From Zygnema circumcarinatum SAG 698-1b (taxonomy: Eukaryota > Plantae > Zygnematophyceae): a stretch of 64,000 nt of DNA. The notes below the pieces were generated by a model, which worked only from the letters and a program-made list of their open reading frames with translations, had not been told where the DNA came from and made no database searches. The position numbers and the translations under genes are program-made. The stretch is taken from positions 620,001 to 684,000 of the forward strand of contig CM074821.1 of assembly GCA_037447605.1 (NCBI GenBank). Reading direction: 5' to 3'. Below, piece by piece: positions 25,828 through 28,800 of this stretch; within the stretch, counting starts at the first letter, position 1; each line of letters opens with the position of its first letter.

Positions 25828-28800
25828 TGACCTTGGAAGCGAACATGGAATTTTCACGAAGGAGGCCTCTTTTCATCATCGTTTCTGCCTTAAATTTGTT
25901 TCTGTTGGCACAAGAATCGGAGAGCCAGACTCATCCTAATGATGGTGGGCGGGATTCAACTTCTTTGCAATTAGGAGTGGTTTTCTTGCCTTCAGTATGT
26001 AGGGTTCGGTTAGAGGTTTTCAGCAATTTACATTGCCTCTGTTTTTATTGGATTTGTCTCTCTTCCTGCAGCGGCAGCGCTGAATGCTTTGTATGAGGCC
26101 CTTGGGAAGCCCGCGCAGCTTTCTTCTTGGGAAAAAGGAGATCCCTGTGTCTCCAAATGGCAGGGAATCAGATGCGGACGAAACAATCGGGTTACGTTTT
26201 TGTAAGTGTTCGGCAGCTTTAGTGTGGGCCTTGTTACATCATTCTGCTTCTAAAATCTACGCGTGCTGCCGAATGAATGGAAACGTACCAAGTATTTGCT
26301 TTCCAACAATTCAGTGAACCCCGAGTTAAGAGTGTTCAGATTCACTTACAATCTTTCAGCAGAACGTTTGTTTTTTCTGCGCACTTGCTCTGTAATAGAG
26401 GGGTTTGCTCTCAAACTATGGGAAGGACACTTTCTGTGTGTTTCTTGTTTAGGGTTTAACCCTTACATGTGTGAAGTGTAATTTGAACGAGATATGAGCG
26501 CTCTGGGTGTACCTATTGAAACACATTTTTTGGAGTAAGTACTTAAAGAGTATTTTACATGTTTTTAAAAAGAGATGCTGTGATTCTTTGGTTCCAGGCA
26601 ATTGAGCAACCTCGGATTGTCAGGAAAAATACCGCCGGAGGTTGGCAATATGCAAGCCCTGACGAATTTGTAGGTTTTGCAGTCCCTCCCAGTGTGTCGT
26701 GTTCTTTGGAATACGTGGAGCTACAACTCAGTATTTTCCTTGAGGCAAAATATGTGATTCTGTAGCCAGAGGGAAGGAAAACAGGCGCTTAATACGATAT
26801 GAAGTACGAGAGAGAGAGAGAGAGGGAGAGGGAGGGAGAGAGAGAGAGAGAGAGAGAGAGGAGAGAGAGAGAGAGAGAGAGAGAGAGAGAGAGAGAGAGA
26901 GAGAGAGAGAGAGAGAGGAGAGAGAGAGAGAGAGAGAGAGAGAGAGAGAGAGAGAGAGAGAGAGAGAGAGAGCAATAAGAGTGCGAATCCTTGTGCTGAT
27001 TTTACTGTGCGGTTGACGAATGCAGAGACCTGTCCTACAATCCAAACATTGGAGGACCCATACCTCCGGAAGTTGGGAAACTGACTAACTTGACCATCCT
27101 GTGAGTCTCTGCAGAACTTTAACTTAAAGAACGTCAGAACTGTCTGTTGCTGATTTCTTTTTTTACTCTTAATGATTGAGATTCTCCCTGTCATCCTTTC
27201 ACTTAAATAACGAAAGGATGACAGTAAGTTTTTCTCTCATTTGACAGAATTTTCCGTTCTCAGTTCTCAGTCAAACTGCCAACCTATGGAGGGTTCCAAT
27301 CTAAGAAGTAAGGCACGTTATTTATTTCTCCTTTTAATGTAGCTAACTTCAGATTTAAGGTTTTTTGAATCTGGGAGGCAGAAACTTGGTCTATTGCGGA
27401 TTGGCAGGGTCTATTCCTCCTCCTTTGGGCGATATCACTCAGCTCAAATTCCTTCAGCTTACAGGGAATCATCTTACAGGGAACATTCCTCCGGAATTGG
27501 GCAAATTAAAGAAGCTTTACTGGCTCGATATTTCGGAAAACAAAATCGGTGGGCCCATTCCTGTATCGCCGGGTCTCGATAGCTTGGCTTCAATTTCACA
27601 TTTTCACTTCAATAATAATTCCCTTTCTGGACCAATCCCTCGCCAATTAGCCATTCTGTCCAACATGTGGCACCTGTAAGTAACCTGTCAGACATGTTTC
27701 ATTAGCATTTGGGTTTGGCAGAAATCTTCTATTTTCACATAGCAATGCTCTTTACAACATAGAATTGAAATTGTATGAGAGGTGCTGTTTCAGTTCCGTG
27801 CTTCCTTCCCCCTCTTTTGTGGTCAAGCCCTTGGGAGGGTAAAAAAAAACAAACAAACAAACAAACAAACAAACAAACAAAAAAACAAAGAAATATATGC
27901 TGAGAATGAATAGAGTGCTTCATGCTGACATGTATGTATGCCACAATGTTGGAATGATAATATGTGATGAAATCTTGACTTGATCCATTTTTCATTTTGC
28001 AGTGTTTTGGATAACAACTCCCTCACTGGACCGTTACCCCCAGATTTGAGCAACCTCTCCGAATTGGCTGTTATGTAAGAATGTCAAAAAGAAAACTTAT
28101 TTTTTAAGAGTTTTCAAATTACTTTCGAGATTTCAGAGTCAGAAGTTAGTTTTTGCTGTTTGTTGTGCATCGCCATTATTCCTCACATAAATAGTAGGAG
28201 TGTTTCAGGAGCCTCTATCATTTGCGGAGTGAATAGAAAGACTGTGTTTCTATGTTGCAGTTATTCTGTAAACAGTGCAGAGGGAAGAATAGTGAGAGGG
28301 TTTTGTGAAATATTCTTGATATTGATTGACAAAAAAAAAAAAAAAGGGAGGGCCTGACAGGCGGCTGAGCTTCAACAAATTTTCCGGAAGCCTTCCTTCT
28401 GCATACGGAAATATGCCAACCCTTCAGGAACTGTAAGTTTTTAGTTTTGTTTTTTTTTTAACTGAACTGAACTGCTCTTGAACTGAATTTGAGTGAATCG
28501 AACCAAGCATTTCCTGAGACAGCAATTTTACTTTTTGGTGTGACTGCAACTTTGCACTCGTTCGCACTAATGGTTCTCGTTATCATCAAAAGTTGATTTG
28601 CATTTTACCCTTTGAAAAGCCAACCCTGCAGATCGCTCACAATACTAACATTAGGATGCCATAGTACACAATTTCAAACTTCAAATTTTTTTCTGCTTGC
28701 TTCTCAATGCAAGAGGCAATAGTCCTTGCGCTGTTTCTTAGTAGAATGAGCTGAAATTGTTTTCTGCTCTGCTGGGATATTTCTCAGCTCTGTAAGGGAC

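Follow-up and report, generated by a model that had tools for sequence, protein, structure and literature searches.

The locus described here raises the question of whether the copper-binding histidines of the Arabidopsis receptor CARD1/HPCA1 have counterparts in streptophyte algae. It lies in a stretch of 64,000 nt from Zygnema circumcarinatum SAG 698-1b (Zygnematophyceae; assembly GCA_037447605.1, contig CM074821.1, positions 620,001 to 684,000), the whole of which is called the window and from whose first letter all positions below are counted. Two paralogous receptor genes of the window, gene 1 and gene 2, each encode three histidines at matching places in the leucine-rich repeats (LRRs) of the ectodomain. 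Judged from their sequences, both genes appear to be streptophyte-algal members of the LRR-VIII-1 family, to which CARD1/HPCA1 and the CADLs belong, and their histidine triad is very likely homologous to His197, His199 and His222 of CARD1.

Previous work has described the site in CARD1 (gene At5g49760, subgroup VIII-1a), for which the structures 9VBD (wild type), 9VBV (triple His-to-Ala) and 21AZ are available. His197, His199 and His222 of CARD1 coordinate Cu(I) (Ishihama et al., Nat Commun 2026, PMC13184263). The CARD1/HPCA1 ectodomain structure was solved, with a cryogenic electron microscopy map, copper was the main metal by inductively coupled plasma mass spectrometry, and the Cu(I) state was argued for (PMC13184263). 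In H197A/H199A/H222A CARD1 (HtriA, PDB 9VBV), the metal density was gone and H2O2 responses were not restored (PMC13184263). Around the triad, Trp166 touches both His197 and His199, Asp168 forms a hydrogen bond with His199, and two residues of the SEA-like domain, Arg447 and Pro534, complete the pocket (PMC13184263). The triad is conserved in group VIII-1 of the LRR receptor-like kinases (LRR-RLKs) and absent from the other LRR-RLK groups; the survey behind this statement used Phytozome 12.1 with strict cut-offs and covered 405 sequences from 57 land-plant species, with no algal homologue reported (PMC13184263). CARD1, CADL1 and CADL3, all of subgroup VIII-1a, are the only members shown to restore the responses to H2O2 and to 2,6-dimethoxy-1,4-benzoquinone (DMBQ) (PMC13184263).

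The two genes of the window, and the parts of them that carry the triad, are as follows.

25845..34384, + strand: gene 1, an LRR-VIII-1-like receptor whose kinase motifs are degenerate, from open reading frames and exon mapping; an N gap (34416-34425) lies near the provisional 3' end.
27382..27675, + strand: gene 1 exon 4, 294 nt, flanked by two phase-2 introns; codes for LRR3-LRR6 and the first part of LRR7, with the whole triad.
27521..27529, + strand: gene 1 W-L-D (TGG 27521, GAT 27527) on the LRR5 strand; aligns with CARD1 166/168.
27599..27607, + strand: gene 1 His-Phe-His, equivalent of CARD1 His197/His199; its PDB match is HPCA1 only.
27671..27673, + strand: gene 1 third His (MWH, followed by L in the next exon), putative equivalent of CARD1 His222.
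45987..55549, + strand: gene 2, an LRR-VIII-1-like receptor whose kinase has HRDVK and DFG intact; exon lengths as in gene 1.
47396..47689, + strand: gene 2 exon 4, 294 nt, with predicted AG/GT sites; encodes W-x-D and the triad.

The triad codons are CAT 27599, CAC 27605 and CAC 27671 in gene 1, which reads SHFHF...MWH, and CAC 47613, CAC 47619 and CAT 47685 in gene 2, which reads RHLHL...LKH; exon 4 of gene 2 also has the Trp codon at 47535 and the Asp codon at 47541. In both genes, the second and third His codons are offset from the first by +6 and +72 nt. Within the LxxLxLxxN register, the first two histidines take positions 3 and 5 of a repeat, and the third is at position 3 of the repeat that follows (MWHLVLDNN in gene 1, LKHIIADRN in gene 2). 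By our own count, the repeats that bear the triad are LRR6 and LRR7, and the conserved W-x-D is in LRR5. The earlier note, made from the sequence alone, had named histidines of CARD1/HPCA1 as holding a copper needed for H2O2 perception, which the published work bears out. It had also placed the codons at these positions with identical spacing, and this is confirmed; its assignment to LRR5/6/7 is, by this count, slightly off.

The gene models were guided by a distant relative, the protein P0003, and by splice-site phases. Both ectodomains are open frames over 11 exons with common lengths (72, 75, 294, 72, 72, 69, 75, 72 ...), and the introns between the LRR exons all have phase 2 and GT-AG ends in both genes. 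In each gene, THP(N/D)DG comes directly after the signal peptide; next are a pair of N-cap cysteines, 12-14 LRRs of plant type, a C-cap that reads GNPLC or ENLIC, the motif C-x4-C-x16-C-x-C, a further domain that is SEA-like, a transmembrane segment and a kinase. The ectodomain organization characteristic of group VIII-1 is found in both, and both also have the triad that marks the group. In gene 1, the order is signal peptide, N-cap, ~12-13 LRRs, C-cap, (SP)n stalk, Cys motif, SEA-like domain, transmembrane segment and kinase. The (SP)n stalk separates the LRR C-cap from the four-Cys motif; it is encoded by a Ser-Pro microsatellite in frame in exon 11 (30526-30708, + strand), and gene 2 is without such an insert. 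In gene 2, a purine-rich microsatellite of the GGA/GAG type (~1.3 kb, 48800-50090) fills the predicted intron between exons 8 and 9, and a tandem repeat (52580-53020, + strand; VQFSS in all frames) falls in the predicted intron that follows the juxtamembrane exon and precedes the first of the kinase exons.

The reading frame of the triad in gene 1 is real and no open-reading-frame artefact. RNA contigs from four public runs of three studies join the gene 1 exons 27026-27100, 27382-27675, 28003-28074, 28361-28432 and 28788-28856 via GT..AG. The joints 27100>27382 and 27675>28003 were both found in runs X1, X3 and X6, and run X2 has the second joint only. Since such GT..AG exon joints occur only in RNA-derived sequence, gene 1 is transcribed and spliced. 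The spliced translation stays open through the site, reading ...ISHFHFNNN...SNMWH and then LVLDNN across the exon joint.

The kinase ends of the two genes are dissimilar. Gene 2 has the motifs GLGGYG, VAVK, HRDVK and DFG. The kinase of gene 1 (32499-34384, + strand) has AVSGRGK as its Gly loop (A-x-S), in a piece reading ...VSGRGKVYKG..., is without the alphaC Glu, and reads HRNVK for HRD, with DFG kept; from these motifs, it is reasonable to infer that this kinase is catalytically dead. After ...LQQHLAG (33187) of gene 1, no GT donor of fitting phase was found, and the open frame continues into a repeat. All three histidines are present in gene 1, as had been proposed for the kinase-degenerate copy.

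To place the histidines on CARD1, the window proteins were compared with sequences of the PDB. When whole exons were used as queries, receptors such as GSO1 and FLS2 outranked HPCA1 by summed repeats, and only the alignment ranges and bit scores were usable; because long LRR receptors swamp such searches, short pieces centred on the loop served as queries. When a 25-residue piece of gene 1 was used, HPCA1 was the sole PDB protein matched, and 18 residues aligned with 21az_A 186-203, APGLDMLLQTKHFHFGKN. The H-x-H of gene 1 falls on 197/199, and the 21az_A chain therefore uses the natural numbering. A 23-residue piece of gene 1 around W-x-D aligned without gaps (query 1-20) on 21az_A 165-184, which puts its Trp at 166 and its Asp at 168. 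For exon 4, residues 2-84 of gene 1 aligned with 127-214 of 21az_A, and residues 1-86 of gene 2 with 124-214; both ranges fit one loop insertion of 5 residues in CARD1.

The structures 9VBD and 9VBV, which differ at the triad only, provided an internal control. Gene 1 scored 115.0 bits against the wild type and 106.4 bits against the His-to-Ala structure, and gene 2 scored 112.8 and 105.1 bits; because both alignments end before the third His, these drops correspond to the loss of two His. P0003, a VIII-1b protein whose alignment covers all three His positions, scored 168.4 bits against 9vbd and 155.0 bits against 9vbv, a drop of 13.4 bits, or about three His. When both window ectodomains were aligned with 114 VIII-1b proteins (MAFFT), His was found in all three columns, both genes included; in the third column, 113 of the 114 VIII-1b proteins have His and one has a gap. 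The claimed equivalence to the CARD1 histidines has thus been obtained directly for the first two, from the PDB piece, and for the third indirectly yet consistently, from the family alignment and the mutant score. By these alignments, both window proteins have the three His equivalents of a CARD1-type site together with the LRR second shell of Trp166/Asp168, the latter placed by the gene 1 piece and by the alignment range of gene 2.

The likeness to CARD1 extends over the H-x-H strand (KHFHF in CARD1, SHFHF and RHLHL in the window genes), the third His one repeat on, the Trp and Asp at 166/168 one strand earlier, the P-G-L-D loop that leads to the His strand, and the overall order of LRRs, Cys motif, SEA-like domain, transmembrane segment and kinase. 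Besides the longer loop of CARD1, the proteins differ in that gene 1 alone has the (SP)n stalk and degenerate kinase motifs.

The triad was also found in five proteins of Closterium (Zygnematophyceae), namely P0126 (CLOP_g23600), P0127, P0128, P0129 and P0170, which came from several strains and whose Closterium origin was confirmed via PMC13730384. They read L[W/F/Y]FFDITDN..GPVPVQPGFDTCT.I[AG]HLH[ML].RNQL...LP.LIHLLVDNN, with Asp at the 168-equivalent and a PVQPGFD loop ahead of H-x-H; in the repeat after that, position 3 is the third His. They share with the window genes the triad, this Asp, the loop, the same Cys motif and the SEA-like start; they differ in having Phe in place of Trp at the 166-equivalent and a 23-residue repeat between the His strands, and their ectodomain identity to the window genes is 32-34%. 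Some Closterium loci are truncated or repeat-ridden. At one of them (L001 of Closterium NIES-67, BQMB01000079.1), positions 7600-10000, upstream of the truncated receptor-like P0002, hold extended arrays of satellite DNA together with duplicated, fragmentary LRR exons that read 'SHLSRNQLTWLPGELGRLPKLIH' / 'SHLSRN...LIH', the strand being His-x-Ser and not His-x-His; the kinase half has a gene annotation of its own there, and tandem repeats of kinase exons occur (24028-24616, 26957-27906). Being satellite-rich and fragmentary, this locus was set aside as uninformative on the triad, and the other Closterium proteins were used.

The post-LRR parts of the two genes bear on their place in the family.

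30471..30911, + strand: gene 1 exon 11, encoding the C-cap, (SP)n stalk, C-x4-C-x16-C-x-C and the start of the SEA-like domain; 17.1 bits with the family hidden Markov model (HMM).
51147..51823, + strand: gene 2 exons 11-12, encoding the C-cap, C-x4-C-x16-C-x-C and the SEA-like (ALE2_N-like) domain; 67.6 bits with the family HMM.

When the Cys/SEA exon of gene 2 was searched against 1.84 billion representative proteins, five proteins were found at E<=0.001, none with more than 40% identity: four land-plant LRR receptor kinases or fragments and the Closterium protein P0002. Two of the four land-plant matches are At1g06840-like, and the other two are similar by eye. The distant relative P0003 (951 aa) is At1g06840-like, of group VIII-1b, and a single continuous alignment joins its ectodomain to HPCA1 99-546. 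A homologue search with P0003 gave VIII-1b proteins only, and the W-x-D...H-x-H pattern was in none of these retrieved homologues. A search with the exon-4 fragment gave a single match, an unrelated fragment. With the HMM of the post-LRR domain, built from 111 VIII-1b proteins, the score of gene 2 compares with 6.6 bits for the best of 400 shuffles. Against Pfam ALE2_N, gene 2 reached 25.3 bits (cut-off 27), and P0003 is also just below the cut-off. For their SEA-like domains, neither the window genes nor P0003 had a PDB match by phmmer, HPCA1 included.

The kinase of gene 2 is 48-55% identical to 119 VIII-1b kinases, as against 32-40% to 4 other LRR-RLK kinases. In a quick maximum-likelihood kinase tree, which had only four distant outgroups, was without VIII-1a or VIII-2 sequences and contained some long branches, the window genes and a Closterium kinase formed a group with a Shimodaira-Hasegawa-like approximate likelihood-ratio test (SH-aLRT) support of 85. 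This group adjoins the land-plant VIII-1b (86), and the clade of window genes, Closterium and VIII-1b is separated from the other kinases with an SH-aLRT of 97. The window genes stand outside the VIII-1b sequences that range from bryophytes to angiosperms, and the kinase of Closterium P0125 groups with gene 2. At the level of the motif, the Closterium triad and this tree support the suggestion of the earlier note that the site may predate land plants.

The surroundings of the triad separate the algal proteins from VIII-1b. The VIII-1b proteins (At1g06840-like, CADL4-7; for instance P0003 and P0016 from Selaginella) resemble the window genes in the invariant triad and its H-x-H-(21)-H spacing, in the Cys spacing, in the SEA-like domain and in the kinase. 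However, the second-shell pair is Arg/Gln in all 114 of them, as against Trp/Asp in the window genes and Phe/Asp in Closterium; they also lack the PG(L/F)D motif, in a loop shorter by 2 residues. The window genes thus carry the LRR-side shell of CARD1, with Trp, Asp and the P-G-L-D loop. Because the algae and CARD1 share the Trp (or Phe)/Asp shell while VIII-1b has Arg/Gln, the CARD1-like pocket looks ancestral. As far as sequence characters go, the window genes would be a mosaic, with the LRR-side shell and PGLD loop as in VIII-1a and the Cys spacing and SEA-like domain as in VIII-1b, which is consistent with a lineage that diverged ahead of the 1a/1b split.

Taken as a whole, it is probable that the two genes are algal LRR-VIII-1 members that keep the CARD1 triad and, by homology, most likely hold Cu(I). 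The triad, on the concave beta-sheet of LRR6/LRR7, would hold one Cu(I) at the ectodomain surface; the LRR5 Trp and Asp would buttress the site, and the SEA-like domain would cover it. As proposed for CARD1, H2O2 would oxidise the copper, or quinones would interact with it, and the resulting change in the receptor would lead to signalling. Gene 1, as the kinase-degenerate copy, may serve as a non-catalytic partner or as a decoy, since it is transcribed and has kept the site despite its degenerate kinase. That the algal receptors carry out copper-dependent redox sensing is put at slightly better than an even chance.

Several observations weigh against this reading. For the third histidine, the correspondence to CARD1 His222 is indirect, being drawn from the LRR register, the family alignment and the score difference, and CARD1 has one extra residue before His222 (197 to 222 = 25). 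With the short strand piece of gene 2 as the only query, HPCA1 was not retrieved from the PDB. The Cys spacing of the window genes, C-x4-C-x16-C-x-C, is of the VIII-1b type and not of the CARD1 type (C-x2-C-x9-C-x-C; 421, 424, 434, 436). The SEA-like domain of gene 1 scores only 17.1 bits against the family HMM, which is weak though above all shuffles. CARD1 and the window genes have no phmmer-detectable similarity in this domain, and the 1a and 1b domains are too divergent for phmmer to place the partners Arg447 and Pro534 on the window genes. The conserved Arg of the VIII-1b 'yRLksP', which might correspond to CARD1 Arg447, is Glu in gene 2 and, by eye, Leu in gene 1.

The alternative that survives best, although we consider it unlikely, is that the histidines are homologous to those of CARD1 and were kept for another role, such as a contact with the SEA-like domain, Zn or Ni binding, pH, or another ligand, and that copper-based H2O2 sensing arose later, in VIII-1a. 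The restriction of the demonstrated H2O2/DMBQ rescue to VIII-1a members (PMC13184263) would agree with this, as would the strong divergence of the SEA-like domain that completes the CARD1 pocket, together with the missing 'yRLksP' Arg of both window genes. Because VIII-1b retains the triad with an R/Q second shell, the triad can evidently persist in different surroundings. However, the algal proteins keep not only the triad but also the CARD1-type Trp/Phe, Asp and PG(L/F)D loop; three surface histidines so arranged are typical metal ligands, and in CARD1 the dominant metal is copper (PMC13184263).

Far less probable is that the triad reflects shared ancestry without selection, or chance, the histidines of two similar paralogs having no particular role. 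Gene 1 and gene 2 are 46% identical over the N-cap and LRR region, and ~37% of the concave variable positions are identical between them (hand count from the paralog alignment); with such identity, the sharing of three residues between the two paralogs is not significant alone and is weak evidence. The strong evidence is the invariance of the triad across proteins whose ectodomains are only 33-39% identical overall (114 of VIII-1b, 5 from Closterium and the two of the window), combined with the rarity of His; from other LRR-RLK groups, the triad is reported to be absent (PMC13184263). His makes up 6 of the 478 ectodomain residues of gene 1 and 8 of the 470 of gene 2 (1.3-1.7%), and half or more of these fall outside the triad. 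Most improbable of all is that the window is land-plant DNA, or that its genes are ordinary land-plant VIII-1a members, so that the finding would repeat the published conservation, for although the kinase tree contained no VIII-1a sequence, it places both genes with Closterium and outside VIII-1b, the Cys/SEA exon of gene 2 is without the close relatives that a land-plant gene would have among 1.84 billion proteins (5 matches, none >40%), and the Closterium triad stands regardless.

A further-reaching version of the favoured reading, in which the algal genes keep the CARD1 site, holds that copper-based H2O2/quinone sensing by LRR-VIII-1 arose in streptophyte algae, that the CARD1-like pocket is ancestral and was later rebuilt in VIII-1b, and that gene 1 and gene 2 form a sensing pair; this version is offered tentatively, as a possibility that we regard as rather doubtful.

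The window is eukaryotic DNA with many introns, and the surroundings of the two genes are rich in kinases. At least three further genes of the receptor-like kinase or receptor-like cytoplasmic kinase type lie upstream, at 6083-7713 (+ strand), 10138-12013 (- strand) and 21098-22900 (+ strand). The six 10-N gaps of the window are mostly within simple repeats.

The copper site of CARD1 has been known only since 2026, and the record of its conservation had covered 57 land-plant species only; in the literature searched, no paper was found that links HPCA1/CARD1 or the triad to streptophyte algae. The algal genes extend a known family and a known site and bring no new mechanism. As the triad and a CARD1-type shell occur in two streptophyte-algal lineages, the probable metal site is likely to be older than the origin of land plants. 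The finding points to the ancestral version of the pocket and gives divergent natural variants, the kinase-degenerate copy included, with which the requirements of the site may be tested, and it bears on how apoplastic signalling by reactive oxygen species was assembled during the move to land.

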